Shown: in pieces, positions 4,316-47,870 of the stretch | Numbering within the stretch: the stretch's first letter is position 1 | How the letters are laid out: the number at the start of each line of letters is the position of its first letter | Source of the DNA: Octopus bimaculoides | Taxonomy: Eukaryota | DNA: 64,000 nt | Assembly (NCBI RefSeq): GCF_001194135.2 | Contig: NC_068986.1 | Location: 20,553,349 to 20,617,348 of the forward strand | Direction of reading: 5' to 3' | The notes under the pieces: generated by a model | What the model was told of the DNA's origin: nothing | What the model saw: only the letters and a program-made list of their open reading frames with translations | Database searches by the model: none | Made by a program: the position numbers and the translations under genes

Positions 4316-4354
<39 letters not shown>

Positions 4355-4678
4355 TCATCGTCGTTTAACGTCCGCTTTCCATGCTAGCATGGGTTGGACG
4401 ATTTGACTGAGGACTGGTGAAACCAGATGGCTACACCAGGCTCCAATCTGATTTGGCAGAGTTTCTACAGCTGAATGCCCTTCCTAACGCCAACCATGTA
4501 TATATGTCTATGTGTCTTTGGTATGTTTTTGTCCCTGTAACTTAGCTGTTTGGCAAAAGAGACCAATAGAATAAGTACTAGGCTTAAAAAACACAAGTCC
4601 TGGAGTTGATTGTTCGACTAAAACTCTCCAAAGTAGTGCTTCAACATGGCTGCAGTTAATAGATGAACAACTAAAAGA

Positions 4679-4709
<31 letters not shown>

Positions 4710-4725
4710 NNNNNNNNNNAAAGAG

Positions 4726-7750: not shown

Positions 7751-8120
7751 GATAGATCCAAGATTGGGTGTGGTAGAATAGGATAATTTAAGATGTATGT
7801 ATGTATATATATGTAGGTATATATGTGTGTGTGTGCGCGCAACAGGTTAGATTTGTATAGGAGCACAGGTCAGTGATAGGTCAGATTCAGTGATTTATGT
7901 TTAAATGTTACATTTGAATATTTTCAATTATGAATTTCTACTGGCTTTGTAGAAATTTAGGTATTATTATTTGATGTCAATATAGATTTTTTCCTCTTTA
8001 GCAGTTGGATGCATGTACACACGTTTGCAACTATAGCTTTATTGTGCATCTTCATTGGTTAGTATACATATATCTCTTTATACACACAAAATGTACGTTT
8101 GTGTGTATATAGATATTATC

Positions 8121-9290
8121 ACATCATCATTGTTTAATGTCCGTTTTCCATGCTGGCATGAGTTGGATGGTTTCACAAGAGTTGTCCTGACTCCAATTGT
8201 CTCTTGTGGCATGGTTTCTATGGCTGGATGCCCTTCCTAATGCTAACCACTTTACTGAGTGTGCTGAGTGCGTTTACACAGCACCGATGTGTGTGCATTT
8301 TGTGTGGCACCAGCACCTGTAAAGGACAAGCCTGTATGTGTGGATGACAGTACAATGAATTGCCATAACTCTTGTGTCCTTGTCAATTCCTCAGTGTCTG
8401 AAGATTCTTTAACACTTTGTCCCATGTCTTCCTGGGCCTACCCCTCCCCCAGGTTCCTTCCACAGTGGCTGTCCCTCATCCATACACATCATGTGACCAA
8501 ACCAGTGCAGTCTTCTCTCTTTCACACAACATCTGCTTCATATATGTAGTTTTCCTCTTAAATCATTTACACTCTATCGTGTATACACACTGATATTACC
8601 CCTCCAGTGGAGTATGTTAGCTTCCTTTTTTTCAAGCCTTCACAAGTCCCCACTAGTCATAACCCATGTCTCACTGCCATGTAACATAACAGTATGTGTA
8701 GAGGCATCATGCAATCTGCCTCTCTCTCTGAGAGAGGGGCCTTTAGTTACCAACAAAGGTGGAAGCTTTCTGAACTTTGCCCATTCTGTTCTTATTCTAG
8801 CAACTACACTTTCAGAACTTCCTCCTCCACTGCTAACTTGATCACCCCGAGCATTTGTGGGAGTCGATTGTCTGCACGTTTTTAGTGCTTATTGTACCTG
8901 CACATTTGTCACACACAGACTATTTTCTCTGTTAACCTTCCTGTGATTCTGCTACACCTCGTATGTGTCGACAAGTGGCGGCTGAGAACTGATCCTTGGT
9001 GATCTACCTGTATACTGAATTCATTGCTATACTCGCTGCCAACCATCACCTTACTGGCAGCATCCCTGTACATGGTTTGTACAGCTCTCACTAACCACTC
9101 CTCTGTCTCTAGCTTCCACATTGACCACCAAGTAAGGGAGTGGAAATCCCTGTCAAAGGTTTTCTCAGTTTCAACAGCTAAATACTTCTGCAGTTGCTTT
9201 ATTGGGTATATAACATCAGTCATGCTTCAGACACAAAACCAAACTGCATCTCATTTAGGCTAACTCTTCCTAATTAGTTGAGTTGTAACC
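8121..9290 (-). mobile_element. RTE-clade LINE 3' fragment (decayed reverse transcriptase plus tail)
   Basis: ORF 8909..9223(-) EKTFDRDFHSLTWWSMWKL…EEWLVRAVQTMYRDAASKV…HQGSVLS is RT-like; (GAT)n-type tail at ~8121. Confidence 0.8.
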
Positions 9291-12268: not shown

Positions 12269-12473
12269 NNNNNNNNNNNNNNNNNNNNNNNNNNNNNNNN
12301 NNNNNNNNNNNNNNNNNNNNNNNNNNNNNNNNNNNNNNNNNNNNNNNNNNNNNNNNNNNNNNNNNNNNNNNNNNNNNNNNNNNNNNNNNNNGCAAGTGTC
12401 TTCTACTATAGCCTCGGGCCGACTAAGGCCTTGTGAGTGGATTTGGTAGATGGAAACTGAAAGTAGCCCATCG

Positions 12474-16960: not shown

Positions 16961-18024
16961 TGATAGCATTATACAATGATAAATAGAAATTTGTTTCTTA
17001 ATTTGGCTTGGATATAATGGAAATAATTAATTCTCTATTATATTCACTTAATTGTATCTTTTCCTTCTCCTTATAAATATGGAAATAGAAGATGACATAG
17101 ACTAACAAGAATAGATGCAACATAATTTTTGTTTGCTTTTCCATGCTGTCATGGATTGGATAGGTTATCGTGGGCGGAGTCAGTTCTCATGGAGTTTATT
17201 GGGGCCTTATTTTGCTTTTATATTCCATTTTGGGGATGGTTTCTATAGTTAGGTGTTTTTCATGTACTGGGCGGATTTTATCATAGCACCAGAAAAGTGG
17301 TCTTTTTACCTCTATGAGTAAATAATATTCTCCTCTATACAATATCTCCATTCAAGGCAACATGGTTGTGTGGATGAAGAGTGATGGCAAAGAGAATCAG
17401 AGTGAGAGGGTATGATGTGGGGGGGGGGGAGTAGCGATGCAGGTGAGGTGACAGAAGGAGTAATGGAAGAGGCAATGATTGACAGCTATATGTTGTCGGT
17501 GAGGAGATTGAATAGAAAAAAGTACAAGTATGATTGATAGGAAGATAATATTGGAAGAGAGTAATGGAAATCAGAGAGGCTGAAGGTACAGTGATATATG
17601 TCTGCCATGAATAATGTATTAGGAAGTTAGTTTGAGAGAGATGGATAACAATAATGGGAGTGTGACGGATGTCAGTAATACGTGATTTTAGAGGAAGTAA
17701 TGCGAGTGTGATGGGTAGCTATGAAGAGAGTGTGAGTAATGGATGTCAGTGAAGGGAGGGCGAAAGTGATGGCTAGCGACAAAGAAGGGTGAATGATGGA
17801 AATGCATTTGAACACAGATTCAATGCCAGTTTGGCATAATACAATGGTAGAAAATAAATGAATGTTTTTTTTTTTTTAATTAATTTTAGAATTAATGAAG
17901 AATTTCGGTGCTTTGTAAAATAAGCATTTATATATGCACATACATGGCTGTATGATTAAGAAGATTACTTTCCAGCCATGTGGTTTTGGGTTCAGTTCCA
18001 CTGCATGGCATCTTGGATAAGTCA

Positions 18025-18782
18025 TCATGATTGTTTAAATGTCTGCCTTCCATGCTGGCATGGGTTGGACAGTTTGACAGGAGCTGGTCAGGCAGAAGCC
18101 TGCACCAGACTTCTGTGACTGTTTTGGCAGGATATTTACAGCTGGATGTTGTTAACATCAACCACTCAGCAAAGTGGACTTAGTGCTTTTTATGTGGCAC
18201 TTAGATAGAGGTCAAATCAATTTAAAGGACCTCAGTTCACAACTGCCCAAGAGAGACAAAACAAAGCTGCAGCATTTTAACAAAATTCTGGAAAGCATTT
18301 TCACATGTTCTGCCATTTAAGCTATCCTCTTACATAATTTCTTATTTTTTTGTTGTTGTCCACAAGGGGCTAAACACAGAGGGGACAAGCAAAGACAGAC
18401 AAAGGGATTAAGTCGATTATATCGACCCCAGGGCGCAACTGGTACTTAATTTATCGACCCCGAAAGGATGAAAGGCAAAGTCGACCTCGGCAGAATTTGA
18501 ACTCGAACGTAGTGGCAGACGAAATACTGCTAAGCATTTCGCCCGGTGTGCTAACGTTTCTGCCAGCTCGCTGCCTTCTCTTACACAATTTCTGTTAATC
18601 AACAGCATTTGCTTTCAACTTCTGCAGGTCAAAAAAGAGCAAATTCTAAAGGGATGATTAGACACTAAAATATATTAATCAGAGGAGTGGGAAGGAGTTA
18701 GTTACAGAAGAGATAATGAAAAGACAAAACTTTAAGCTCTGGTGGGAGTAGAATGGAGTTTACTAGTTGGGAGAAGAGATGG
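18025..18782 (-). mobile_element. Retroelement 3' fragment (same family as 2857-3478), interrupted by a SINE
   Basis: Reverse-complement match to 2857-3478 on both sides of the nested SINE. Confidence 0.75.
18343..18577 (-). mobile_element. Young tRNA-derived SINE with a Nin/MESC-like central domain
   Basis: Minus strand GAGTTCAAATTCTGCCGAGGTCGACTTTGCCTTTCATCCTTTCGGGGTCGATAAATTAAGTACC; 16-bp TSD CTCTTACATAATTTCT (18327-42) / CTCTTACACAATTTCT (18578-93); CpGs intact. Confidence 0.85.
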
Positions 18783-21295: not shown

Positions 21296-21364
21296 GATTT
21301 GTATTGTGTACGGAGTGACCTGGGTAACTTGCTCAAGGCATTGGGGCGATTGGATGAGGCAAAG
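21296..21364 (+). CDS. OGT: OGT exon 4-equivalent (69 nt): [23 protein letters not shown]
   Basis: tacag|GAT…AAG|gtaaaa (weak donor). Confidence 0.98.
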
Positions 21365-22532
21365 GTAAAATATGTACTTCCTGTGTCATGAAAATTTTAC
21401 TCCACACCTATATTTTGTGTAAATAAATCTATATATTACATATGTGTATATAGATATGTCTGAGTGCATATATATAAACATATATATATAAATATATCTA
21501 TGTATTTATATATATGTGTGTGTGTACATATATGTATGTATGTATGTCTGAGATTGACTGTCAATCTTTTCTTTTCCTTTGTAATATACAATATTGTAGA
21601 TATGGGATCAATTTATCCATTTAACTGTCTCAAAGATGTTAAACCATCCTTTGTCAAATCTATTTAATAAGTTTTTATCTTCTGTCAGAAGACTGCAGTG
21701 TGGTCATGTTGATTTTCCCGGGATTCCCTGTTTTTCTAGATGATGGAGCTGGGGCTTGAACATATCTGGACATTTTGTTTCTTTTTAAAAATTCAGACAA
21801 AAAAATGAACGCATTACTTAGTTTATTTATTTATTTTTTTGTTTGAATTTTTACCTGAAATTGCTTTCGATTTCCTTATCATCCTCATTTACTTTGATCA
21901 GTTAGACCCTCCAAATAAAAGCCAAATTTAAATTGTGTTTCATAATTGTATATTTCACACTTGAAAAATGGAAATTTCCTTTAGAATTAGTACTTATTTT
22001 GTATTGCTAAGCAGATATGAATCCAAGCTCGATAGATATTGATGGCAGATATTCCAATTTGATAAAAACTAGCTCAGCTTGTAGTTATGTTTCATAAATT
22101 GAAACCCAACAAAGCATTTTACCATGCAATATATAAAGCTGTTTTCTCAAACTAATTTTTTTCTAAAATACGAGACTCCACGATAGTATGAAAAACAGTT
22201 AATTGAAATTTCTGCTTGGTCTATTTATAACTGTTGCGGTTAAGCAGTTTAGTTATCGAATGTATTTTATTAGAGAAGGCTTTTAGATTTAAAGCAAAAT
22301 ATTTCTTGATAATTTGCTTGTCACCTATTGTATAGCTAATGAATTTAGAGGGAGAGTTAAATCTAGAATGACTTGTAGAATAAAGGTTTCAAACCACTGC
22401 GTTCTTTACAAATGGGGGAGGCATCCTTATCGCTACATTTGAACAGGTCTTCTTTGAACCAGCACTAGACCTAATAGATGTATTATCTTTTGATTAATCA
22501 TTCTTGTTAGAGAAAAAGTAAATCATTTTTAA

Positions 22533-22747
22533 CCCCTTTGTTACCCTGTTTTTGTTGAAACACCCGTGCTTTGTTTCAATTAATTTTGGAAATAGTGAAT
22601 AAGTTATTAAAATAACCTGGTCGTTATTAAAGCTGTTGTTTGGAACATAAATTAACATGAAATTCTGAGGGAAGGTTTTAAGATTATTTTAAAACAGTTT
22701 GTTTTATGAAGGCAAGGGTGGGTTCTGGCAGGTTGGTATCTAAAGGG
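22533..22747. mobile_element. piggyBac-type MITE (subfamily 2)
   Basis: TTAA|CCCCTTTGTTACC…GGTATCTAAAGGG|TTAA. Confidence 0.75.
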
Positions 22748-25700
22748 TTAAGTTTGTATGTGTATAGTGGGGAAAGTGGAAAACTGCATGTAACTATGTT
22801 ATGTAAGTGTATGATGTGTGTGTCTATATATATGCTCACATGCATTATTGAACTAAGTTGATAGGTTTACATTAGAGTTTTATTTGAAATTTAATGATGA
22901 TGATAAATCATCTAAAAGTGATCTGGCTAACTGACAGTTGGTTTTTCAATAATTAATCAGCAGGTTAATCTGTTGATTCAGTAAGGGGTTTTTTTTTTTC
23001 ATTTGCATGTTGAAATTTATACCTTGCATATTAATTAGATTTAATCTCTTATTTAAATGGGGGAATGAACCTGCTCTCTCTAATCCATATTTAGCTTGAT
23101 CTAGCATTCTGTTTATGCTGTCATGTAGGGATACATATTTTATATACTCATGTTTGAGAAATTTTGATCTTAGCCATGTAGAGAAGTAAATAAGATACTA
23201 ACTTTGTTAGTTTAGGATTGAACAGCCAATTTGTACTTTTGCTCTGTTACCTTCTACCTCTGTTGACAAGTAAGAGAAACAGAAGTTCTTGTTCAGTGGT
23301 GCATTACCACTTGCATGAAATGAACTTGTAACTGCAGCAAAAGTTTTATTACTTTTATAATTGAAAACCCTTTATATTTTCCCCTTAAAGTGGAATTGTT
23401 AAAATGATCCAATGCATTGAAAAGTATTTTTTTTAAGGATTTTGTAAAACAGAATATTCTCTTATGAAATACACCTGAATTTTTTTTTCTTTGTCATTTT
23501 CTTCCTATATTTGATTTCCCCTTTTGAAAGATCCTTGCTTCTCCAAGAAATGTTCTGTTGATAATTTTTTTCCAAACTTTTCTTTGAGATACAGGCTAAC
23601 CTTTTCCCCTCCCCTTCTACCTAAATCTTCATACATTCTGTCCTGAGGGATAGGGGAAAAATACCACAAAACGATCTAGACTTTCCCAGGAGAATCAATG
23701 ACCACTCTGCAACCTTAAAATTTTGAGATTCACAGGAAGGAAGTTCAGGCTGGTCGTGGTTCCCTTACATACTGGTTCTAAACTTAAAATTCAAAATAAA
23801 ATCTTTTCCAAATTTCTGAATGTTTTAAAACTTCAGCTGCAATCATATTATGTATATATTTTTGCCTGAAGTTTTTCTGATTTAAGTGACCAACTTTTGT
23901 TTGATAAAGCCTTTTGACTTTAATTTAAAATCTTCTACCATAAAAATTGTTTTTGTATCATAATTGCTTTATCAAAATTAAAAAAACCCAACAACCCCCC
24001 CCCCCAAATTCCAATAGAATTTTCAAGCTTTTTAGTATCCAGTATGTATGTGCATTCTGAGCCAGCCTTAACTTCCAATCATTGCTATCATATGTTATGA
24101 AAGCTGGAACCCCTACCAGTTAACCCCAACACCATTTAAAAGATTATACTGCAGGATGCTGAATGAAGCCAACTACTACTACTATTACTCAATGGAGTGT
24201 GAACTGTTTGCATTGCAGCACTTGCTGTTTAATATTGAGGGAGAAAGCAAGGCTTGAACTAGTCTTGCTAATACTGCCACAATGTCAGTCAGGATCCAAT
24301 TGCTCCCACTGTTATTTATATTAGGACACATTTTATAAATTTAGTTGTCACATGTCTTTAATTTAATGTCAATGCTTTCTAAAGAAAAGAGAAAAGGACT
24401 TGGCAGCGCCTCTTAAAATTCATCTAAGAAACTGCATGGGAAAAAATATATATAAGAAAAAAAAAAAGACTTGGAAATAAATATTTTCCTTAGAATTTAA
24501 AGAAAAAATATTGCAATGTCTAGTCTTCTGTTGTCATTACAACACATTGCTTAGTTCCTGTGATTTATATTGTTCTTGTAGTATAATGACAATTATCTGT
24601 AGAGGCATATCTACTTCTCTTTTCTGTATATGGTTCCCATAGTGCATTTTTTTACACTCTTTGTACTCTTTGCCAATTTATCTATTTTACTGTTACTACT
24701 TATTACCACTACTACTACTACTATTGCTACTCTTTTTTAACTACAACTAGTAAATGTGCGCGCTTTTAAGTTCTTGTTATGTCGTCAATCTGTAAGCTAT
24801 TTTGTGTCTAAAACGAAAAACCAAAAGTACGAAAGTATATGGAACACATGTGCTAAACATTTTAAAACTTTTTTAAAGCTTAGAATTTTTAGAAATACAC
24901 ATTTTCCTTTTTTTTTTCCCTCCTTTTTTTCCGTCTGTCTCTTGAGTCGGTATATAATACAGCAATACCATCCTGGCTACATTGTGCAGTATATTTACAT
25001 TGACAAAGGATTGTTTAACTGCTTTAGGGATAGATAAGATACTTTATTGTTTTGTAAAAAATTAAGTTCAAATCACTACAGGACAATGTTTATTGAATGT
25101 GTAAGACTTCCAGTTACAAATGATGCAACATTTTGTTTTTTATCATTTTGAATAAATTTTTGATTTCATATTCTTTTCTTAAAAATTGGTCAGAACAGTG
25201 GAGATGGCTGAAGCAGCAGACTGCCAGGCTGATGCTTTGATGTAATTAGTTTGGTACCTCACTGTTCTAAGTTCAAATCCCAATTGGACTGACATTTTTT
25301 TTTTGCATACTTTGAGATGAAATTGGCCCTAGCAATTTATTGGTGTACTTAATTCAACAAATCTTTCCCAACCCCAAAAAATGTGCCTGATTCCTGATTA
25401 TGGCAACTGTAGGAGGTAACAATAATGATATTGTTAAATGTTTACTTCATTATTATTAGCTTGCTATTTTGAAAGGTAACCATAATGAAAATTTAAATCT
25501 TAAAGAACTTGAATGAATTCTTATTAATTTATAAAAGCAAATTAGTTTGAGTGGGATACAAATTTCAGTATATATGTATATATATATAGAGCAATCATGC
25601 AGACAAATGTCAAATTTATATAAGAATATTCCACATTCTACAAACATCTCTTTGTGGAGAAACTGTTTTGATTTTAGCTGTAAAGCAGTTTAGTTTGATT

Positions 25701-26609
25701 TGAGTTACAAGATGGACTTGCATATTTAGAGCTCTACTAAAGTAAACTTAGTGGGTAAAATCATAGGACAAATGCCACTCTTAAGTTTTGATGATTCTTT
25801 TGGTTAATTTGTTGTTTAATGGTCTTTTAAGAATTGTTCCAATTGTCTTCATATATGAAGGATTTATATTGCACCAATGTGTGTCTGTTAAAGGTCATCA
25901 TTTAATGCTTGTCATGTTAGATTTCCATTTGCAACCTTATTACATAAGATGTGAATCAGCTGCTTACTTGGTGTCCGAAGCAGATGTTTTAATGCAGTTG
26001 TAGATTAGTGATAATTTTATGTCAACTTTTCATTCTGGGATGGGTTCCATGTCTCATGTCCAAGTCAGTGATTACTTGGAGATACTTCCCCCTCAAAGAC
26101 AAGTTGAAAGACCATTTCATTTTTGGTTGCAGCTGGATGCCCTTCATTCATTGACCACTTTACCATGTCTACCAGATGCATTGTATTGTGGGACTCACAC
26201 TAGTCTTCATTACTCTGTAATGTGTTTGTTCACTCAAGATAACAGGTCTTGTGAAGGTGATTACAAGAGTGATGGCAAACAGTGAACCAGGCTGGGTCAG
26301 TGAAAGTTGAGGGAGTGTAATGTTAGGAGAGAAGGTGAGGGTAGTAGAAGAGAAAAGTATGATGGATAGAGGTGGGCAATGATGAGTGATAGGTATCAAT
26401 AGCAAATGGCTTCTGGCGGGAGAGAGAGTGATGATTGGTAGTGCAGAAAGGGTGTTCTGGGGTTGTATCTGGTACTGCCTGAAAAAAGAGAGTGAATAGT
26501 CGAGTAATTTAGATGGAGCTGATGTAAACTTGGGAGCGACCTGTGTATGTGTAACTAACGCACACACACAAGAAATTTAAATATATATATGTATGCGTAC
26601 AGGTAGCTT

Positions 26610-27180
26610 ATATCTTTTAACCACCATCGTTTTTGACATTTCACCTTGCTTGCACAAGTGGACAGACCTTCTCCAGCACTGCAGGTTGCCAAGCATGTTA
26701 GTCCTTTGTCATCTCCTACATGGATCTAACCACCAGTCTTCATATTATCCCATATTGTGTTTTTCTATAGGTTCCATCCACTTTGAGTGCCCTGCATTTC
26801 TTCGTACAACTTTTGTCTTATACATTGTATATCCACACCAGCACAGTTGTATCTGTCATACTCTACATCTGATATTTTTAATATCTAGTTTGCCACACAA
26901 CTCATTTGCATTCTGTTATTGTTCATGCATAACACATCTGTCAGAGCATGTTCGCTTCAATTCTTTTTAGTCTTCCCTTTAAGTCTTCTGCTTTAAGAGC
27001 TTGCATCAGAGTGAGTACACAGGCATCATAAAAAATTTCCATTGACTCTGAAAAAGAAACCCTTTGTAACTTCCTCCAGGCAATAGCTCCTTGAACTTTC
27101 TCCAACTTGTTTTGCCCTGGCTACTATACTTTTGCACTTACCTTCATTGTTAATTTGGTCACCAAAATTACAGACTACTT
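26610..27180 (-). mobile_element. Decayed RTE LINE 3' fragment
   Basis: Similar to the 8300-8900 RTE segment; minus-strand wording resembles the RT C-terminal region. Confidence 0.55.
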
Positions 27181-27835
27181 CTAGGGAGCCTTCTGGGCCT
27201 TTCAGAGAATCTGTTTCCTGTGTGCGCTATTCCTGAAAATCTACTGGATAATATTTTATACAATTTGAGCATTTTGAGCAAACCTATATGAAAACTAATA
27301 GCAAAGCTGCTTTTCATATCAAAAATACTGTTTTGGATAAAGTTAAAAGCTTAAAACTGTCTTTGAAATTGATGTTGAGTTGCATCTATCACTTTCCAAA
27401 AAGCATAAAACTACATACCAGAAGTTAATAATAATTAAAAAAAAAATATTTTTCAACTGGTCAGTACAAGATTCCATAGTAACTAAATGTACAAGCCAAT
27501 AAAATACATTTTATAAGTATAATCACCAAGTATTTTGTGGTAGCTGGTAATAGACATTTCTTTTGTGTAATCCTTTTCCAAGGAAGGGTGCGTCACCATT
27601 TGGTCATGAGGTATAGCTTGTGATTTAGCCCAAATTTAACATTTTAGTGCTGAATAATATTCAAAGGGCAAAGGCTAGGATATAGTAGCCTCTACCTATT
27701 TTGAAATGGATTTGAACACAATCCAAGAACTAATTCATTAAATTTCACTTGTCTGTATTAATACTGACAACATATTTGATTTCCATATGTTGTTATAAAT
27801 TATACATAATAAATTTTCCTTAATGGCTCGTGTGC

Positions 27836-27874
27836 ATCTCTTCAGGTGTGTATCTCTTCAGGTGTGTATCTCTT
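27836..27874 (+). repeat. 16-nt tandem repeat ATCTCTTCAGGTGTGT x2.4
   Basis: Units at 27836-51 and 27852-67, partial unit at 27868-74. Confidence 0.9.
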
Positions 27875-28343
27875 GACCATGGTCCTGCCCCCCACCCCCG
27901 TGCTTAACAGCTATTTTGTAAACCTCAAAAATTGAATATTTTATTTTGTTCATGTAATATATAAATCCATTGACCTGTTAATCTGCAGTTGATGTAATGG
28001 TTGTTTGCTCAATGCTCTAATCTGCCAATATTTCACACACACACACACACTAGTAGGATCAATTTAGTTCATAATTGAATCACTTCTGTGGAGTAATGCT
28101 TTACTAACAAAGGATTCATAAAAGGCACTATTTTATATTTTTCCCTCAAAAAACAAAAAAACGGTTGACAAATTTTATTGTCCTTAATAATTTTAAACTG
28201 GGAGTTACCCATTCAATAAAATTCCTGTGGATTGATTTTAATCATTTTTCATATTTTTAAAAACTTGACTGCTGATTATTCACTGTTGTCAACATTCTGT
28301 ACCACTGAACACTAATGATCGTCTTTTTTGATTTCTACACAAG

Positions 28344-28616
28344 CAATGCAGGTGTGCTCACTGCTATCAAATAGTGTGCCCGCCTGGTCAGTCAGTCACT
28401 CGTGTCTCCTGGGTCAGTCACTAGCTGTGGGTCGGTCAGCGGTTGGTCATCTTCTACCTACTCCCGGCCCAGCCTGGCCAGGGCAGGCTGCTGCAGCAGC
28501 ACCAGGACCAAAGGACAGACTCCTCCTAGTTGACTACTACTACAGAGCTATGAATGAATACATTGGTATTAGTAGACATCTCTGAGGTGTGAGCTGAAGG
28601 TATTGTATACTTAAAT
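28344..28616 (+). other. Candidate decoy/poison cassette exon in OGT intron 4
   Basis: GC-rich island in an AT-rich intron. Acceptors AAG (28343) and CAG (28351) follow a T-tract. Candidate donors at 28587, 28589, 28600 and 28617. Stops TAG 28422-24 or TGA 28583-85, depending on the acceptor. Confidence 0.55.
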
Positions 28617-31476
28617 GTGAGTCAATTTCAGTTGTAGTCCCTGGCTATTTGTCTCCTATTTCTGCAGTGTAATGACATCTCTTTTACTGATTCATGATGG
28701 TCAAGTGTGATTTGGGGCAGTTTGGATTGCAAATTTCACCACCTAATGACATATATATATTTTCCTTTGGTTATAGTTTTTGCTGCTGGCTTTGAAACTG
28801 TTTTCCTCTTCATTGTTATAAAGGACACAGCTTAATTTGACTCCACCTTCAAAATTGTTGATGGAAGTAATATTTGTTTTAATTTCAGTTATCTTAGATG
28901 ATGAGAAAGCATTTAGTTCATATAACAGTTGAAATTTCTCTTGACTAATAATAGAATATTCTTATCACTGAATTAAAAAGAAATACTAATTTAAGAACCG
29001 ACAGGATTAACTAATTTTAGTTTACCCTCTCCTTTAAGTTTTACAAAATGCTGGTCTATAAAAATACACCCTTTAGATGTTGTAGTGTAATAAAAAAAAA
29101 TGTCTATATAATTTAGTAGATATATCTTTTTTATTGCATCTTAAAGTGTCTTTAGTCAAAACCATTCACTTGATTTAATTATGTGCAGTTCTCTTCTTGG
29201 AATTGATTTTGAATGCTGAAGGCGCACCCTTGGTATAAGAACTTCATTGGCAAAACATGCTGCAAGGGCAACAACCTGTTCACACCATGGTTGTTAAGTT
29301 TTTTTTTTTTTTCATTCACTGTTTTCTTTGGCACACTGCAGTTTATTTGTTGACTCTTAGTTCTCTTGTATTTAGCCCCTTTCTAGTAATAAATAGTCTT
29401 TTGTTGCTGTCATAAATGTTTTCCAAATTTTTTTTTTTTAAATAGATATTTTGTATTTGATTTTGATTTGTTTAAATTGTATAACTTATATGGAATTTGA
29501 AATTCTAATTGATATAGTTGTGAACTATTTGATTAAACATAGCTTTTTTGGTAAGTACAGCTAACTGAGAATATTCATTGAATCTAGTTAATTTAGCATT
29601 TTTTTGTTTTGTTTCGAAATCATTTTTGATTTCGCATCTGTTTTTGAAAGGAGACGACAAAAAACGTAATTCTGTGTTTTAACCTTTTAACACCTCAAGT
29701 GGTGTTAGTAGAATATATTGAAGTGTTTTTTGTTTTAATTTTTTTTTCTTGAAAGAATTATTACAATTTACAAATTTGCCCTGGTAAGAACCATTATGGC
29801 AAGACTTCATTTTTCAAAATCAGCTTAGTTAAGTGGATATTTTATTTTTGTTTCAACTTACTGTATGTTTAGTATACTTTTTCTTTATACAGTGTAATAG
29901 TTCTAGTTCTTCACGCAATCAATTTTCTGAATAATATGCTATATATATATGCTTTTCTAGTTTCTGAGGTAGGTGTAAGAAGTAACTATTGAAGGAGATG
30001 ACTGAAGAAAATCATTGTTCAAGAATACACGGTGTAGGATTAGGACTGAATCTTGCTCAGAAAATCTGCATCTTAAATGCCATCGGCACTCCTTTAGTTA
30101 TGGTAATCTTAGTAACAGCATATATTTGAAGTATTTGTATTTTATATCTACTTAATATGTATGCAAGAGAATGTAGGATGCTGCATGGTGAAATGGTTTT
30201 GGAGAAGTTACACATCGTCACACGACTCATCGAGTAACATTGAATGTTTTACACTTGGTCTTTCAATGAAGATTCCCTGCTGTTGTTTCCTATTGGATTC
30301 CTAGAAGCCTACAATTGCACAATGTTCTGCTTTCTCAGTGTGCAGTAAACCATGAAGAGTTACAGATCTTTACCAGTGACAGGATGTCAAACCAGATACA
30401 TTGAAATCAAAATGGAACAGTATAATTTATTTTACTCAATATAACTTTCCATGGAAGTTTAAAAAAAAAGCAAAATGCAGTTTCATATAAGATATATTTG
30501 GAATGCTGCTTAGTTTCAAATTATTTTAAATTACCTGAAATATAATTTTGATACAGTGTTTAATTGATGATGATGATGATGATGATGATCACTCATATAG
30601 TATGAAGATGCTTTCCCATTCTTTGCTTGATCTATTATTTGCTTGAGCTGTATTTTGCTCAAAAGTTATGGCAAGGAAATTAGTTAAAAGCTACTGCATG
30701 TATGAACCAGTATTTTTGCATTTTATGAAATGGAATTTCTTCAAAATGTAGTCAGTGTGTCACATAATTAAAATTTTCCATCAGAAATTGGTTGATAAGG
30801 GCTGACAGAAATAGCATATTTTCTTTTATGCATTATTTACAGTAGAGGATTCCTGTTTCATGTTTTTTTTTCATTATTATTGTATGAGGAATTTGTCCCA
30901 GAATATATATTAAAGTGTTGTTTTTTTTTCTATTTAAGTAAAAGGGTGAGAATTTATGTCCTTGCTTTCTGCTGAGATTATTAGTGATAGAATATTTCTT
31001 GTTTGGTTTCTTTGAATGGTGATTTTGTTTTCTTTTCCTCTCTCTCTTTCTTTCTATCCTACTGTCCCATGTAACAGCTTTACCTCTTTATGCCATTATA
31101 CTGCAGTTGAAAGGATATTGATATGCCCTAAAATACAAGAAAAATAGAAAACAAAAACACCAGCATCAAATAACTTAATTTGTATTATTAAAAGTGACTA
31201 CTATAATACTGATTTTTTAAGGTTCTTTTCATATTTTTTCATACAAGCTTTTTTTTATAAAGTCATTTTTCATAACATCACTAATTTCTCCAAAATTATT
31301 GCTAATTTTTCAGAATAATTGTTTTTCTATCTTTTTTCATTTTTCTTCTATTAGATTTTTTTTTACATTTTTATTTCGTTTCTTTACAATTTTTTTCTTT
31401 GTCTATTTCATTTATATATTTCTATATCAGTATTTTTGTGTGTATGTATTTTATGCAGTTACTTTTTTATTCCCTT

Positions 31477-31521
31477 AGCGCGCGAAGCATTGCGCGGACG
31501 CACTTGATCGCAGGCGAATAG
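31477..31521 (+). promoter_or_regulatory. GCGC-rich intronic island 1 (candidate splicing-regulatory element)
   Basis: AGCGCGCGAAGCATTGCGCGGACGCACTTGATCGCAGGCGAATAG, directly after a ~280-nt T-rich tract and a TAG; shares three motifs with island 2. Confidence 0.5.
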
Positions 31522-32400
31522 ATAATTTTTTTTTAGATGTCAGATTTCTTCTCTTGTATTTTAAAGTTTCTTCATCTTGCCATGGATGACTTGGATGTCT
31601 TCAATTTATCCAAAATTTTTTGACTGATAAATTCTAAAAGTACATTTTAATTCACTTTGGGCTATATAAATAACACCTTATTTAAGTGTTTTATTTTGCA
31701 AAATTTGTAATAATTAGTGAAGGGAGTGTCAGTTTTTCAATGTTAACAGCAATATCGTGTTTTAGTTAAGGAAAAATTAAAAAGAAAACGAGCAGAAGTT
31801 TTCATTGGAATAATAACTAGAGTTAGAGAAATACTTCAAAAAGTCATGTGTGTGTGGCTACCCATGAGATGAGGCAGCTTATTGGGAGAAGAGAAGTGAA
31901 ACCTAATTATTTTATTTCACCAAGCAGAACGGCTTTCTTCTCCTATTATTACAAGAGAAGAGAAATGACATCTTTATTTTTTTTTAAATTTTTTTATATA
32001 CATATATATTTAATTCCATATATGTATGTATATAAAATGCGTGAATGTGTGTATGCATATATATGTGTGTATATATGCATATATATATATATATATATAT
32101 ATAATTTTTGTTTTACTTTGGTGTTATCAGCACAAGTCATCACTAATGTATGGTTTATAGAACCAAAGTTTCTTTTAGCAGCTAACGTTTCAAATATATA
32201 ATTAACTTAAATTTTAGATTTATTAAAATGTATTTATCAATATTTAATTTTACTTTTTTTTTCCCCCCCTAAAATAATTTCAATTTTTTCTTTTGCTAAA
32301 TCTCTAGATGATGCATTTATACAGATGTTAATTTGTTAGGTTGCCTAAGAAAACATGGTTCTAAAATCCTATATGCATGGTTAGTGCTTAACACAGTATT

Positions 32401-32463
32401 ATTGCGCGCGTTTAGTTCATAGTGCAAAACTTCTACTGGAGCGCAGGCGACTTGAGCGCTTTG
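32401..32463 (+). promoter_or_regulatory. GCGC-rich intronic island 2 (candidate splicing-regulatory element)
   Basis: ATTGCGCGCG…GAGCGCAGGCGACTTGAGCGCT, ~95-155 nt upstream of the exon-5 acceptor. Confidence 0.5.
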
Positions 32464-32557
32464 CTTTTGGATGTTCTTTTTAACTTTCTTTGTCTTTTGC
32501 AAACCTGTACAAACATCATTTATTTTGTTTATAACTGTAAATTTGCCTACACTTTAG

Positions 32558-32734
<177 letters not shown>

Positions 32735-34303
32735 TGATCGCATTGATGACCCCACTACTTAATTTTGTTACTTAGCTATTTTATAAAATGTCACCTACCT
32801 TTATGATGCAAAAGATGCAATGCCAACGTGATCTACACAAATATCAACACACATCACAGGCTTCTGCATGGATGCTACATACCTAATCCTCAAAGTTTTG
32901 GTTGGCCCTATGCAGTGGGATTGAACTGGGAACCAATTTGTGACATGAACTTCTTAACCACATGGTTATTTCTGTTCCAGGTCTTAAAGGAAGTGCTTGA
33001 AATAATTAAGGTATGCAACTAAACAGTACTGGTACTATGTAAGAGAAACAATGCATTGTTTTCCTTTTCTCCAGTTAATTTCACAGTATGAGTTAGGTGG
33101 TCATATTTATAAGCCCTGAACTAGGACCATTTCTTCAGTCACTTGGTATTCAAAATGGTCAGATATAGCAATACTGGTTAAATTGACCTCATTGACCAGA
33201 TGTTTTTCACATTGGTATTTCATTATCGTCTGAAGCTGTATTGTTTGCACCATATTTAAATAAATGTGATCATGAGTATGAACACTAAAGTCTATCTGAC
33301 AATACATGCAATGACTGTTAATTTCAACAAAATTATGAACATCAAAAAAAGTTTCTTACAGGAAAGTATTGCTTCCTGAATGACAGTTACATAGGTTACG
33401 TGATTAATTGCTGTATAATGGTTGACAGTAATCACATGAACTACATTTGTGAGTTAGTTTGACTGTTTCCTAATATTTACTAATACAACTTGCTAGTAGC
33501 TTAACTAGTTTGAGAATTAGGTATAAATTTTTTTTATGAAAAGCCCCCAACATAGCAATGTGGAAAGTATCCTGTCTTGTAGGAGAGAAATATTGTTATG
33601 CATATTATTAGTAGTTTTAGAAATGTTCTAACTTGATACACTTGTATTTTTTCCCCTTTGTAACTCTCACAGTATTATGCAATTTATTTCACTGTATTTC
33701 TGATATGATGGCTTAATAACATTTTTATTCAACTTCAACTCTATCATCAAGATATTTCTTGTGCATTCTTATGCACAAAGCAGGAGTTTCTTTTGAGAAT
33801 TTAGTGTCCGCTTTTTCAGAATTCATTCTAACAATGTGAGTTGTCTGAACAGTATAAATTAGTTTAACATGAAATAAAAATTGAGTGAAGTGTTTTAGAT
33901 TTTTGTTTATGCAGATCGTGTATTTTCAACTGATCTGTTTAAACGATTCTTTTGGAGTAACGTGGAGGATAGCTTAATTATTCTTGGATCACTGATTGAG
34001 AGGTGGAGTTTGTTCTAGCTTCTCTTGTGTCCTGTGATCTGCTTAAGGGCATCCAGCCTTAGAAACCTTGTCAAATCAGATTGGAACCTGGTGCAGCTCC
34101 CTGGTTTACCAATTTTCAGTCAAACTGTCCAACATATGTCAGTAGGGAAAGCAGATGTTAAACTACAATGATGATGAACATTACTGAAAGTTTTGTTATT
34201 CAGTGTGAGGATGGCTGATTTCCATTGCTCAGTTGCTTATCTGGTCAGTGTACACACAATTGTGTATTGAATATCAAAAGTGATATTTGTTTAGGGTGAT
34301 TTT

Positions 34304-34349
<46 letters not shown>

Positions 34350-34584
34350 TGATGGTAGCAGGTGTAATTTGGAGGAAATTTGACTGGTTATTTCTTGCTT
34401 CAGCCAGACCTCAGGTGAAAGCATTCTGCCTGGTTCTGTGTACATCAAGGATTTTCTTTCGAAGATTGTATGATTTTAGTTTTCAGGAACTTTATTTTTA
34501 GCAAGTTGCTAGTGCATAGATTCATTTAGTTGCTGTTTAGCACAAGGTTCTGATTAAATCTGACTTGTAATAAAATGGGTTTAA

Positions 34585-34800
34585 CCCTTTAGCATTCAGA
34601 TTACTCTGTCAAATGTAATTCTTATTTATTCACATTATTTTGAATTAATCATGCCTCACTTTGTAGCTTCAAGATTTCAATGATGCAATTGTTTACTTTT
34701 ATGATATTGTAGGATAAGTGTGAGAGGCCAAATCCAGCCAGTTCGAATGTAAACAGGTAGATTATTTTGGCTGGATGTGGCCAGCTAAAATGCTAAAGGG
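34585..34800. mobile_element. piggyBac-type MITE (subfamily 1), opposite orientation to 15690-15910
   Basis: TTAA|CCCTTTAGCATT…AATGCTAAAGGG|TTAA with perfect 12-bp TIRs. Confidence 0.85.
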
Positions 34801-37173
34801 TTAAACTTGATAATTCTTTTGTTTGTTTGTTTTTTGTACATCAGGAACTTCTTTGTCTAGTATGTCCCTCCTTAAACCCTGTTGGGTGTTTTGAAGTAGA
34901 TGAAGCTGGTATTTCTAGTAATTTCACTGACTGCATTAGATGCTCTATCAAGTATTACATGGAAGAACCTTTAATAGTTGCTCTTTAACCTCATATTAGG
35001 ACTGATAAGGTGGACATGATAAAGTGTTCCAGTTGTGGCCGCTGCAACCTCCTGACATATTTAATGTCATTCCTTTAATATTGGTTGAGTTTCCTTTTGT
35101 ACATCTGAAACTGCATTGTCCAGTATGTCTTTCCTTTTCAAAGACTGTAATTTGAGAGAAATTTGGTTACTATTATCTAGTAGTCCAAACAGCAAACACA
35201 CAAACTCTGTCATTGATTGACTACGCAATTTCCTTTAAGTGATTTTGATAGAGAAACTGTGTTAAAATTGACTTTCAAAAGTAACATTTGATACAAGATG
35301 GACTAGAAAAACTGTAAATGTACTTATGTTTGCTATAGACTGAACAAATGATGTGCGTGTAGAATATTTTGATAAATGTGTCTAAGTATATATGTATGTA
35401 TGAGTATATATACATACAAATACGTGTGTGCACATTGATGTATGTGATTTGTATAAGCATATTTATGTGCAGATAATGATACATGCATATGTAAATAATT
35501 GCATTATAAATACGCAAGCATATATTGTTTTTGTGCTTATTTGTATCAAACTTGACTACTTGTGTGACTGCAATGTAATAAATTTGTGGTTTGTATTTAA
35601 CTCCTGTTACAAGATAGTGATATAATTGTTGCAGTTGTTCTGAAGTGTTGACTTTAGGACAGTCTTATCTCAGGTCATTTGCTGATAAAGTTATAACATG
35701 CAGGTAAGAAAATGCGAAGAAAATTGAGTACATTTTACATGTTTAAACCAGAAAAATTGCTTTGAACCCCCCCCCCCCAAAAAAAAACAAACAAAAAAGA
35801 AACAACCCTTGTCATTATGTAAATATTCTGGAGACTGAGATATGACCTTAAAAAAATCCTTTCAAATATTTATAAGTGCCTAAATACTTCATGTATTATC
35901 AACATCTTTATTCTTTTGTGTTGTTTGAAATTCTACATGGTATTTACTCTTACATTTTTTAATGGAAATCTTCAAATTTGTCAAATGTTGAAGTATGTTT
36001 TAGAGGAGCAATTTAGATTTGTGAAGGAAATGCTTTGGCAGAGTGTTGTTGCAAGCTAAGATTGTTTGAAAATGTAATTAAAAAATAATTCCCCAGGGTA
36101 CTATGAAGACACAGGTGTTGACATGTCATAGAATTAATTTGCCAGTGGAAATCTGTAGATATTGAAGCATGGTAAATTTTCTTTTGTCAGCTAAAAGTAG
36201 ACTTGCTGAATGTATTTTAAAGAAACAAAATTCCTGAGATTTTAGAAACTAAGTGGTCTCAGTTTGTTTGGTTGCAAGAAATTATTTATGCAAGCAATCT
36301 GAAGCAGTTGGCTTTAGAAAGGGCATCCAGTTAGTGGAAACCATGCCAAAGCAGACATTTGACCTCAGTCCATCCCTCTGGCTTGTCAGTTCATGTTGAA
36401 CTGTTGGAGCCCTGCCAGTATGGAAAAAGGGACACTAAATTGTTATGAAACAATGCTAACACAAGCTTTTCAAGTCTATCTTGCCTCTAATCGGTGTATC
36501 ATTATTAGAGATTGTCTCCATTAGGGAGAGTAAGCCTGTAATTCAGGTGCCTAAAAGATTGAACATGATAATGGAAACTGGAGAAGTGGTGGCCAGATTT
36601 TGTTTCCATTATTTGTAATATTTATGTTCCATCTGTTTTAGTTTGATGAAATGAGAATATAAGCATAGACATTGTTTCAACTGATTATAGTACTCTCTTA
36701 GAAAGGACCTAGGTTTTATTTCCTCTTAGGCATTTATCTCCAGTGTGAAAAGTTTTGTTTTATTCTTTTTTTTGTAATTTAAAAATAAATTTTGTAATCT
36801 TGTCTACCAGCTTAATATTTAAAGAATATTAATTTTCATTGCAAAAAAAAAAACAAAACAAATTCTAATTTCTTGTCTACAGAAGTTGAATCTTTGTAGA
36901 TATGTATTATTATGACAGTCTTGCTTTCAAAATATTCTCTTTTGAAGAATAGTACAGTGTGCTCAATAACTTGGGTAATGGAATCAGTCACACCTGAAAT
37001 TACTTTTTCCTTTACCAGCAAATGAATTAATTAGCAGAAATGTATAGGGTTTTGCTTTTTACCCCTTTCTTAAGGGGCAATCTTTCATGTACTGGCTGTT
37101 AACAATCGGGCATAATTTTATCATTTAACCTTGTGGTAGTATTGAGGAATTTTCCATTTCTACTGTTACTTAG

Positions 37174-39034: not shown

Positions 39035-39212
39035 CCCATCAGCATTCAGATTACATTGTTTTGAATTAATCAGGCATTATCTCGTAGTTCTGAGATATCA
39101 GTGATGTGATTATTTTTGGAATGGCATTGTAGGATAGGCATGAGAGACTGGATNNNNNNNNNNTGGATGTAAAGCAGGTAGAATATTTTGGTCCAGCTTA
39201 AATGCTAAGGGG
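39035..39212. mobile_element. piggyBac-type MITE (subfamily 1), contains an N gap
   Basis: CCCATCAGCATTCAGATTAC…AATGCTAAGGGG|TTAA. Confidence 0.7.
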
Positions 39213-39940: not shown

Positions 39941-40046
39941 TTTGATTGACCTAGCAATTGACACCTACAAACGAGCTATTGAACTACAGCCCAATTTTCC
40001 AGATGCTTATTGTAACCTAGCCAATGCACTGAAGGAGAAGGGTAAA
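39941..40046 (+). CDS. OGT: OGT exon 7b (106 nt): [35 protein letters not shown]
   Basis: tttcag|T…AAA|gtaagg. Confidence 0.97.
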
Positions 40047-42087
40047 GTAAGGAAGGTTAGAGTGTCTAAAATACATTTCTCTCCTTTTATTGTCCGTATT
40101 CTGTGTCTCAATAATACATTTTGCATTTTAATAAAAAAATACTTAATATACAGACAATAGTTACGGGCAATATTAGTAGGAATGTGAAATTGGTGGGTTG
40201 CACTTAAATTATTATAGGCAGGGGTAATAAAATTGAGTAATTTTTTTTCTATTATTTCTAATGATATTTGAAAATTATTTTAGCAGTTTTGATGGTAGAG
40301 ACAATAGAAAACATGCCTTGTTGCTTTTTCAGTGTCTAGTCTGGTACATCACTTGCTCTGAGCTAAAATCTTGCCAGAGTTGACTTTGCCTCTCTTTTGG
40401 GTAAGGCTAGTGAAATAAATACCAGTGACATACTGAGGTTTTGATTTGATCAACTCTTATTACTTTCCCTTTTAAATTTTTTTCTCCCTCAAATCAAAAA
40501 GAAATAATTATCAAAATCTTTGTCAAAATTTTAGCAAGTAAAACACTATCGTTCTGTGATGACATTTTGCATCATGTGCACCCATATAATTTCATATTGC
40601 TACTGAGGAGGGAGATGCTAAATGGCTATCTTGTAGAAAAAATGTCATACACTCATTGTTAATGTGAGCTTTGTATTAACAGTTAAGAGTTCCCTAAACC
40701 TTAGTCATTTTTTCCGTGAACATGAACTGAAGAAACTTTGTTCTGAATTAAACAAGATTTATTATTAATCATGTTCATTAGTCAGTAGCTTCTCAGATCT
40801 ATTTTTTAACATCTGAAAATAGGAATTTATATAGCTTTTCAAAAAATTTTTACAACTCTGCTGGGCTAAGGCATTCAGAGATTTGAGTTTCGTACTTTGC
40901 TCTTTGGGTATAATTCTTGGATTTTTTTGTAATCATAGGAACATTTGTAATCATTAAAATTGAAGGAATTTTTTTTTAAAATTACAAAGGCAAAACAAAC
41001 TACATTAAAGTTTATAAATAATAGTTAAAATGTATTTTTGATAAAACTGCTTTTTCTGATAAAATTTGTGTGTTTTATATGCTTGAAAGTGTGTGTGTGT
41101 GTGTGTGTAAATGAATGAATGAATGAAAATATATATAAATACACACAAATTTTAGATATTGATTTTGTTTATATCATTTTTCTTATATTTTTTTAGTAAT
41201 TTTATTTTACCTTTTTTTGAAAATAACTATATTACTTGCATTATTGGGGTTTGTTTAAAAATGTAAGTGCTTGTATAGAATTGGATCTAAGAAATCCTCA
41301 TTAATTAAGGTTCCAATTATTTAATATTCATAAAAATAAATCCGCTTCATTTGTACTTGACAGTCTTAAATTAATTAATATAGAAAGTATGAATTAGTGA
41401 ATATAAATTTATTTGGACGTAATTCACAAATAATTCTAAATACCTTCTAGGATAATTATTTCAAGATTTTTTTTTTTTTTACTAGGCCTCATGTTTTATA
41501 ACAGTCTATTTTATTCAACCAGTGCTTTTTATGGTAACTGCAAGCAATTTGATTAAAAACATACAAGTTCATTTAGTAGCTACTGATTTCCTTGAATTGT
41601 TGAATTGTAGCTTATGTGGTTTTTTAAAAGAAAATTAGTATAATTTAAACATAGACAGAGCATGTGTTCCCTCATTTGATTAAATTTGCATTTAAAAATA
41701 CTTTTACATATCTGAATATTTCTCTATTCATTTATGTTGGGTTCTCTAAATATTCATTTTGATATGAAGATAACTTTCTGTTAGATGGTAGCTGTTTTTG
41801 TAGTTAAAAAAATATGAAATGAAGACATGAGGCCTTTTAGCAAGTATGACTTATTATATCACTTGTCTTATCATCTCCCAGAGCTGTATGCTTTTTGTAA
41901 TGTTTCTTCTGGTTGAAAAATTACTAGGCTAAATCACTTTTGCTTCAAACTTGTTAATTTCTTTTTTGTGTCAGTTACGAAATATATTTAATCTATTGAT
42001 ATAACTACCAATTCACTATTTAACGAGATCAGAAAAATTAAGTTGTTTTGTCAATAAAATAAAGTTAGGTCTGACTCTTTGTATACA

Positions 42088-47680: not shown

Positions 47681-47870
47681 GTCAGTTTGATGATTTCCAT
47701 ATATCTATTTCTCGACTTGTGGCTAATTGATTTGACATCATTGTACGAGTATTTTGTATAAATGCTAAACTAGTTTATTAAAATTAATAATTTTAATCAT
47801 TTGAAAATTTACTACAATGTTAATCTTTCACACTTTTCTAATATGTCTGGCTTCTCTTTTTTGTCAACAG

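Follow-up and report, generated by a model that had tools for sequence, protein, structure and literature searches.

A conserved, stop-containing cassette exon in the octopus OGT intron at the position of vertebrate intron 4: a candidate unproductive-splicing switch

Intron 4 of mammalian OGT has an architecture that responds to O-linked N-acetylglucosamine (O-GlcNAc) (PMC5588854, PMC7261177). Does the intron at the same place in a mollusc serve a comparable purpose? The locus that raises this question is a 64,000-nucleotide (nt) stretch of the Octopus bimaculoides genome (RefSeq assembly GCF_001194135.2, contig NC_068986.1, positions 20,553,349 to 20,617,348 of the forward strand), referred to here as the window and numbered from its first letter. 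A tblastn search with human OGT as probe placed the OGT gene on the + strand of the window, from 16146 to about 56215. A preliminary description of the sequence had singled out the intron at 21365–32557 as the octopus counterpart of the O-GlcNAc-sensing human intron, and had suggested that the splicing feedback loop either predates the protostome–deuterostome split or evolved convergently. The reading we favor, with a probability of roughly 65%, is that this intron corresponds in position and layout to vertebrate intron 4 and acts as an unproductive-splicing switch that limits OGT, with O-GlcNAc as its input by analogy. The evidence comes chiefly from a cassette exon inside the intron that is better conserved than any coding exon compared.

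The fourth coding exon of OGT lies directly upstream of the intron. It ends in GGATGAGGCAAAG (GAT GAG GCA AAG) at 21364, and GTAAAA follows from 21365. The intron closes with CACTTTAG at 32557, and the next exon opens GCATGTTACCTG (GCA TGT TAC CTG AAA, encoding ACYLK). The features at this junction are as follows (a caret marks a splice site).

21296–21364 (+): upstream coding exon, identified by tblastn with human OGT and by splice-junction search; 92.8% identical to cuttlefish complementary DNA (cDNA)
21365–32557 (+): target intron, 11,193 nt, phase 0, donor AAG^GTAAAA, acceptor TTTAG^GCA
21389–21391 (+): TGA encountered in frame on retention, by direct reading; read-through adds VKYVLPVS and then stops
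32558–32674 (+): downstream coding exon; 94.9% identical to cuttlefish cDNA, the highest value among the coding exons

Direct reading and the gene model agree on a phase 0 junction between ...LDEAK and ACYLK..., as first described, and direct reading likewise places the retention stop at 21389–21391. Two further claims held among the 20 introns that lie wholly inside the window: the target intron is the longest of them (the runner-up, 32675–37173, has 4,499 nt), and only its donor and the one at 46521 (GTAACC) lack a G at position +5. Intron 1, which is cut by the window edge, is longer still (~21 kb in O. sinensis, ~12 kb in a third octopod), and the target intron is the second-longest of the OGT gene. 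It measures 12,216 nt in O. sinensis and 8.6 kb in the third octopod; the O. sinensis copy has ~1 kb of extra sequence relative to the window (locus L001, 35739–36748, corresponding to about 27550 in the window). Scored with a small position-weight matrix made from the gene's own donors, the target donor is the weakest of 18 (5.9 bits vs 6.5–13.2 for the others), and its GTAAAA is kept in three octopods. Length, a donor lacking +5G and an early retention stop are each common, are jointly within chance and are weak cues when taken alone. The case for a regulated intron rests on features beyond those in the preliminary description.

The position of the intron is widely shared. Introns at the same codon boundary were found in a snake (L009 7117–9974, 2,858 nt), a shark (L012 23671–27010, 3,340 nt), the hemichordate Ptychodera (L019 2766–5419), the brachiopod Lingula (L020 2839–5339), a chiton (L021 4773–6951) and the Pacific oyster (1,685 nt). 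In the compact genes of Ptychodera and Lingula it is apparently the longest intron, going by how far apart tblastn placed the exons. A block of ~560 nt (75–78% identity) is common to snake and shark at this intron. The block contains a cassette with acceptors 3 nt apart (TTTAG^AAG^), donors 7 nt apart (ATG^GTAACGG^GTTTGT) and an in-frame KVSGG followed by a stop; it lies at 1516–1664 of the snake intron and at about 1693–1830 of the shark intron. Four forms of the human decoy exon, of 143, 146, 150 and 153 nt, have been described (PMC12017769), and since the splice-site offsets in snake and shark equal those of the four human forms, the snake and shark introns can be identified as vertebrate intron 4. 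The placement of the octopus intron at the junction of human intron 4 thus stands, with junction and phase shared with both vertebrates, and by this comparison its position is equivalent to that of the vertebrate intron. The silencer in the vertebrate intron is conserved as far as jawless fish (PMC5588854).

The cassette exon came to light through mRNA of the cuttlefish Acanthosepion pharaonis. Its OGT cluster in the protein collection holds open reading frames (ORFs) of 852 residues with an odd start, MAWSNLG, which derive from two contigs, L007 (SRR30931879) and L008 (ERR4009593). Compared with the normal cDNAs (L002–L005), these contigs contain an extra 261 nt exactly between ...LDEAK and ACYLK..., and the upstream ORF ends ...LDEAKQCRCAHCYQIVCPPGQSVTRVSWVSH followed by a stop. 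The insert aligns over its full length to 28344–28616 and nowhere else in the window, and there is a matching site in both other octopod loci. In octopus, the edges of this predicted cassette read cactaatgatcgtcttttttgatttctacacaag^CAATGCAGG ... CTTAAAT^gtgagt, and its splice sites and first stop are preserved in the distant octopod used for footprinting (L006, GCA_054771915.1). The cassette divides the intron in the following manner.

21365–28343 (+): upstream half of the intron, set by the cassette acceptor at 28343/28344; counterpart of human 'detained intron 1'
28310–28343 (+): 3′ splice site region of the cassette, with a branch-point-like CACTAAT, a T-rich tract and AG, reading cactaatgatcgtcttttttgatttctacacaag^CAATGC; identical in L006
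28344–28616 (+): cassette exon, 273 nt, bounded by canonical AG and GT; orthologous to 261 nt in the cuttlefish mRNA contigs
28349–28440 (+): internal cluster of donor-like sites, CAG^GTGTGC at 28352, CTG^GTCAGT at 28387, TCA^GTCAGT at 28391, TGG^GTCAGT at 28413 and TCG^GTCAGC at 28435
28422–28424 (+): first in-frame stop of the cassette, TAG; the predicted product of 189 residues ends ...LDEAKQCRCAHCYQIVCPPGQSVTRVSWVSH, the cuttlefish peptide and stop are the same, and the stop is kept in L006
28617–28622 (+): cassette donor AAT^GTGAGT, 6.9 bits in the within-gene matrix; conserved in L006
28617–32557 (+): downstream half of the intron, set by the cassette donor and the intron acceptor; counterpart of human 'detained intron 2'

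More in-frame stops follow the TAG at 28422, which has 17 exon junctions downstream of it. These stops exclude the cassette from functional OGT mRNA. Multiple competing splice sites have been proposed to characterize decoy exons (PMC6097662), and donor-like sites of at least 6 bits are ~7-fold enriched here, with five in the 282 nt of the cassette region (the donor at 28617 counted) vs 2.4 per kb in the whole intron.

One cuttlefish gene model (P0003) has 20 in-frame residues (QCRCAHCYQIVCPPG IVYLN) at the junction, which correspond to the first 43 plus the last 17 nt of the cassette; its internal donor is the site homologous to 28387, the first GTCAGT. The insertion is probably a device of gene prediction for avoiding the stops, or a genuine isoform spliced from the internal GTCAGT could lie behind it. 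Looking up P0001 and P0003 returned no entry on record.

An octopus–cuttlefish alignment of the cassette has 260 ungapped columns, of which 96.9% are identical, and a single indel of ~12 nt. For the coding exons of the same pair, nucleotide identity lies between 76 and 95% (most of them 76–88%), in a gene whose protein is 97% identical, and the cassette tops every exon compared. Octopods and decapods separated roughly 250–300 million years ago. For a non-coding exon to be so well kept across that split, selection must, as judged from these alignments, act on its RNA or its DNA. The two flanking exons are the most conserved coding exons in the octopus–cuttlefish comparison (92.8% and 94.9%, as listed), which suggests additional constraint on their synonymous sites.

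These values bear on the simplest alternative, that the intron is merely long, the cassette a product of splicing noise or an assembly artefact, and its conservation the result of a low local mutation rate. The cassette does occur in only two or three cuttlefish contigs vs more than 30 normal cDNAs, and octopus RNA evidence is absent from the protein collection. However, the cassette's identity exceeds that of the exons encoding a 97% identical protein, the other 19 introns are almost devoid of alignable sequence, and the ends of the insert coincide with exon junctions and with genomic AG and GT. We regard this explanation as hardly credible.

Nearly all intronic conservation of the gene is concentrated in the target intron. 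O. sinensis is ~90% identical everywhere and so is uninformative for footprinting, whereas L006 aligns at the exons and almost nowhere else outside the target intron. With deep-intronic defined as lying over 60 nt away from any splice site, 4,112 of the 11,193 bases in the target intron could be aligned to L006; across the 25.8 kb of the other 19 introns the figure was 423. The preliminary description had named a lack of conserved blocks as an outcome that would speak against its proposal; such blocks are clearly present, and those aligned to L006, with two CpG-rich elements within them, are given below.

21365–21949 (+): aligned block in the upstream half, partly simple repeats
23567–25298 (+): aligned block in the upstream half, about 73% identical
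28183–29081 (+): cassette and flanks, 85.8% identical; 160 nt upstream and 465 nt downstream of the cassette
31058–31570 (+): nearly invariant non-coding block of ~510 nt, 93.5% identical (alignment 31051–31569), with long identical runs in three octopods
31476–31521 (+): CpG-rich element A, ...GCGCGCGAAGCATTGCGCGGACGCACTTGATCGCAGGCGAA..., the largest CpG cluster of the intron, with TTGCGCG at 31490 and TCGCAGGCGA at 31508
31942–32557 (+): aligned block reaching the 3′ end of the intron
32398–32460 (+): CpG-rich element B, 100–160 nt before the 3′ splice site of the intron, with TTGCGCG at 32402 and GCGCAGGCGA at 32441

The block at 31058–31570 contains no ORF, Rfam family or tRNA. Other candidate contents of the intron were discarded: Rfam gave only sub-threshold matches on TG/TA simple repeats (and zero matches at gathering score in the whole window), no tRNA was found, and seven ORFs of at least 70 residues, considered as possible nested genes, look non-coding.

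Element A sits at the end of the 31058–31570 block, and about 100 nt at element B are identical in L006. On the + strand of the 64-kb window, the bipartite pair TTGCGCG ... (G/T)CGCAGGCGA occurs only at these two elements. RNA structure was considered as a cause of conservation and set aside in both cases: the cassette folds no better than its shuffles (z = −0.36), and an RNA duplex between A and B is no better than shuffles in octopus (40/300) or in oyster (207/300). Since the cassette is not unusually structured and A/B pairing does not exceed chance, protein binding is the likelier reason for the conservation.

In at least 24 independent oyster assemblies, the whole orthologous intron is kept in mRNA. 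The protein collection lists, in 38 of its blocks, a 164-residue ORF that closes with ...LDEAK-V-stop. The 24 oyster contigs that were read (including L013–L018) are full-length OGT mRNAs in which only this intron is retained (1,685 nt; 603–2287 of L013) and all others are spliced. In other oyster contigs, this intron contributes a poison exon of 64 nt that shifts the reading frame (TGTGATAG^TATACGAGG...CTTTATG^GTAATT), the product of which ends ...MTLYDLLFKSN-stop; more donor-like sites lie beyond this exon. The motif GGTATTGTATAC is common to the downstream end of the oyster poison exon and the 3′ end of the cephalopod cassette, and with a profile built from cephalopods only, this spot is the best match in both oyster alleles, at a marginal E of 0.06–0.09. 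As a mollusc-wide motif it was rejected, as the chiton intron lacks it and gave no profile match, and for this reason the exons of different molluscs are not proposed here to be homologous.

CpG-rich 8-mers are also shared within molluscs, in excess of expectation and on the same strand only. Oyster and octopus have ATTGCGCGGA and TGCGCGCG in common (both in element A), and oyster and chiton have TGCGCGCG and GCGGTCGCT; in each comparison, 0/300 shuffles reached this level and the reverse-complement control gave 0. The shuffles do not preserve CpG clustering, and the sharing is moderate evidence only. In addition, motifs of the GCGCATGC type occur in the orthologous introns of oyster (CTGCGCATGCTATTGCGCGG), snake (GCGCGCATGCTATC) and Lingula (CCGCGCATGCGTAC), and also in shark. 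These motifs may resemble NRF1-type sites. Their sharing across phyla is not significant once palindromic motifs are allowed for.

The conserved blocks might instead be DNA-level elements, such as enhancers or an internal promoter of OGT or of a neighbor, with cassette inclusion as a tolerated by-product. The stretches 31058–31570 and 32398–32460 come without transcript evidence, conserved CpG clusters in a CpG-poor intron resemble protected protein-binding DNA, and oyster, snake, Lingula and shark all have GCGCATGC-type motifs in the orthologous intron; these points would fit this explanation. It accounts poorly, however, for the precise canonical splicing of the cassette in independent cuttlefish assemblies and the conservation of its splice sites and stop, for the strand specificity of CpG-motif sharing among molluscs (reverse-complement control 0), and for an oyster that keeps the whole intron in mature-looking mRNA. 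We consider it improbable.

A wider survey of the protein collection was made with the first 163 OGT residues plus the cassette peptide as query, and its sample is biased by that query and by clustering. The matches, P0169–P0288, form 120 clusters of short ORFs from the N-terminal part of OGT and come from a wide range of animals; 91 of the clusters end just after ...EAK. A GTN donor read as a codon encodes Val, and the 62 clusters whose tail starts with Val therefore represent intron read-through. The other 29 tails, among them mosquito, Drosophila, hymenopteran, snail and oyster entries, indicate alternative exons. The remaining clusters are ambiguous (10) or end at the preceding junction (QYNP^; 6), at later junctions (6) or elsewhere (7). 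One Drosophila isoform in the collection (P0230) ends in an alternative exon at the same OGT junction. Confirmation at the nucleotide level covers the cuttlefish and oyster cases. The survey is a hint that the target intron is commonly retained, or bears a poison exon, across animals; the poison-exon sequences at the junction differ between lineages.

How far does the likeness to vertebrates extend? The octopus intron agrees with intron 4 of human and other vertebrates (PMC5588854, PMC6097662, PMC7261177, PMC12017769) in gene, junction and phase. It is far more conserved than its neighbors, a pattern that Park et al. (PMC5588854) report for the human gene, and in both a premature-stop cassette lies between two intron halves, with several competing donor-like sites and unusually conserved flanking exons. 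The mollusc and vertebrate layouts also have in common tandem donors at the end of a stop-bearing, mid-intron cassette, a pyrimidine tract, CAG and CpG-rich stretch downstream of it, and another such stretch near the 3′ end of the intron. A donor-like hexamer, (C/G)AG^GTG, occurs 6–8 nt into the poison exon in the window (28349–28354), in the oyster intron (about 895–900) and in the snake intron (about 1523–1528), which could be chance or a common functional feature. We treat these resemblances in layout and short motifs as leads, not tests.

The differences are equally concrete. The octopus cassette is longer (273 nt, 261 in cuttlefish, vs 143–153) and has no detectable sequence similarity to the vertebrate exon. 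It terminates in a GTGAGT donor, whereas the vertebrate exon has only weak sites, and it is included in assembled cuttlefish mRNAs. The octopus intron spans 11.2 kb, vs about 3 kb in snake and shark, and contains in addition the 510-nt block and the two CpG-rich bipartite motifs, kilobases from the cassette. The O-GlcNAc response and nuclear detention are known for the vertebrate intron, whereas the octopus intron is known here from its sequence.

An alternative that draws on these differences is that the cassette is a genuine, selected poison exon limiting OGT, whose input is something other than O-GlcNAc (tissue- or stage-specific splicing factors, temperature or another signal), the use of the same intron being convergent. 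The zero sequence similarity to the vertebrate element, the greater length and consensus-like GTGAGT donor of the cassette, and the lineage-specific poison-exon sequences at the junction would all fit. Yet vertebrates, cephalopods and oyster all have one layout, two halves plus a poison exon, in a single intron of a single gene, and the most economical common purpose is control of OGT dosage, a quantity linked in mammals to O-GlcNAc (PMC5588854, PMC7261177). This alternative is unlikely, although we take it more seriously than the others.

Under the preferred reading, a switch that limits OGT, skipping of the cassette would join exons 21296–21364 and 32558–32674 and give productive OGT mRNA. 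Recognition of the cassette, through its good acceptor, its GTGAGT donor and the internal donor-like motifs, would divert the transcript by one of two routes. In the first, the cassette would be included and the mRNA would stop at the TAG at 28422, with nonsense-mediated decay as the expected outcome. In the second, splicing would stall and one or both intron halves would be kept, as in the decoy exon model (PMC6097662, PMC7261177). Either route would leave a smaller share of productive OGT mRNA. The conserved cassette, the 510-nt block and the two CpG-rich bipartite motifs are candidate binding sites for the factors that would set this choice. By analogy with mammals, the likeliest input would be the O-GlcNAc level of the cell or OGT activity, which would make the loop a negative feedback. 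Cuttlefish mRNA does include the cassette, and oyster mRNA does retain the orthologous intron; for octopus itself we infer that the cassette is used, and the by-products would presumably be decayed or detained in the nucleus. The intron's own donor, weakest of those scored and kept as GTAAAA, also counts in favor of this reading. Throttling of OGT by unproductive splicing probably extends to molluscs.

Several points weigh against this reading. No significant match was found by blastn between the octopus cassette or intron and the vertebrate silencer or decoy; Smith-Waterman local alignments to the vertebrate element were no better than shuffles (38/500 and 90/500); and nhmmer profiles run in both directions between mollusc and vertebrate gave nothing at the silencer or decoy exon. 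The octopus OGT cluster in the protein collection consists of genome-derived models only, with zero RNA-derived ORFs, and a search of that collection with the exon-plus-cassette peptide returned only genomic single-exon ORFs for octopus. O-GlcNAc sensing would be carried over purely by analogy with mammals. The cephalopod exon may be closer in function to a simple poison exon than to a decoy, because its GTGAGT donor looks consensus-strong, although it reaches only 6.9 bits in the gene's own matrix, and the human decoy is weak-sited and rarely included. For the CpG-rich elements, the level of action could be the DNA and not the RNA. Finally, the cassette is not unusually structured, which leaves its conservation without a structural explanation.

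With regard to the origin of the module, the preliminary interpretation fares differently in its two parts. A positional counterpart, conserved blocks, the cuttlefish cassette and oyster retention support it in part, and more strongly than the cues first put forward, whereas common descent with the vertebrate element gains nothing, as there is no detectable similarity. A profile of the mollusc element A gave no significant match in the vertebrate, hemichordate or brachiopod loci, and the Lingula and Ptychodera introns, considered as a bridge, contained nothing alignable with either the vertebrate or the mollusc side. It is possible, though we lean against it, that unproductive splicing at the ...EAK^ACYLK... 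intron is an ancestral bilaterian device for OGT dosage or O-GlcNAc, with a poison or decoy exon and CpG motifs that pre-date the protostome–deuterostome split. The sequence of the element would then have been replaced over time, persisting only inside single lineages (vertebrates; cephalopods; to some extent molluscs as a whole). The intron position in seven spread animals, its unusual length in compact genes, the tails seen in the survey and the (C/G)AG^GTG hexamer are hints in this direction.

Other known systems offer partial parallels. Genes for splicing factors such as SR proteins reportedly contain ultraconserved, stop-containing poison exons through which they autoregulate by coupling splicing to nonsense-mediated decay. 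The octopus cassette resembles them in that it contains stops, is more conserved than coding sequence, has conserved flanks (28183–28343 and 28617–29081) and is expected to yield non-productive mRNA. It differs in that OGT is not an RNA-binding protein, so that feedback would need intermediaries, and in that the exon is defined in cephalopods rather than vertebrates. Ultraconserved splicing-factor poison exons are mentioned in connection with OGT in PMC7261177. The decoy exons of SF3B1, ARGLU1 and DDX39B (PMC6097662) provide a second comparison. Here the likeness lies in an intron of more than 1 kb, a highly conserved non-coding cassette with multiple splice-site motifs, and an oyster OGT ortholog with whole-intron retention in an otherwise spliced mRNA; the difference is that the cuttlefish cassette is actually included in assembled mRNAs, and that it is in oyster that retention is known. 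In Drosophila, splicing of the long intron of sxc/Ogt depends on the exon junction complex, according to work cited in PMC5588854, and Park et al. (PMC5588854) found the Drosophila gene to be without an element like the intronic splicing silencer. The parallel is post-transcriptional control through a long intron; the mechanism is another one, and a conserved poison exon is not part of its description.

The gene model underlying these results was derived by splice-junction search from human OGT, a sequence that served only as a probe, and from the O. bimaculoides protein P0125, with which the encoded protein agrees at residues that distinguish O. sinensis. Two junctions missed by the automatic search were read directly (donor GAG^GTATGC at 51503, and exon 52474–52650 with donor CAA^GTAGGT at 52651). 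Coding exon 1 (MAQISDTT) lies upstream, outside the window; in O. sinensis (L001) it is ~4.8 kb before the point where the window starts. Runs of N mark assembly gaps at 4710–4719, 12269–12391, 39154–39163, 52372–52381, 57232–57251 and 58536–59519, zero of which fall inside the target intron and one of which falls in the intron at 51503–52473.

Elsewhere in the gene, alternative donors 9 nt apart (40038–40047) put VRK in or out (KGKVRKVAEAE or KGKVAEAE), and in the intron that follows, a patch of 110 nt (40555–40663) is kept in L006. Alternative acceptors 18 nt apart (53591–53608) do the same for MNELLF before QTNNKAATG. The 190-nt intron at 47681–47870 is of equal length in L006 and aligns throughout, unlike all other short introns. 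A dispersed repeat of ~170–200 nt, probably SINE-like, is present at 1819–2015, 4332–4496, 5378–5556, 8106–8275 and 18022–18200; the copies sit in introns 1 and 2, and none is in the target intron. Downstream of OGT, ARAGORN called a tRNA-Tyr(GTA) on the − strand (60478–60553), where Rfam shows no tRNA at gathering score; the call may be a tRNA-derived repeat or pseudogene.

The publications retrieved describe the silencer, decoy exon and poison exon of OGT in vertebrates only. No paper on an OGT poison exon or retained intron in a mollusc or other invertebrate was found, in a search that was incomplete and leaves such absence unproven. The new object is the ultraconserved poison exon at 28344–28616, together with its companion conserved blocks. 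The cephalopod module is vertebrate-like in layout, and judged by sequence homology it does not belong with the vertebrate element. As an ultraconserved poison exon outside vertebrates, it resides in the gene of a metabolic enzyme and not in that of a splicing factor. A version of the module unrelated in sequence should help to tell its essential properties (layout, competing splice sites) from those peculiar to a lineage (sequence). With a poison exon in cephalopods and retention of a single intron in oyster, unproductive splicing of OGT would either date back much further than supposed or have arisen anew in this intron, and now that the exon, its splice sites and the candidate control motifs have coordinates, both readings of its age are directly testable.

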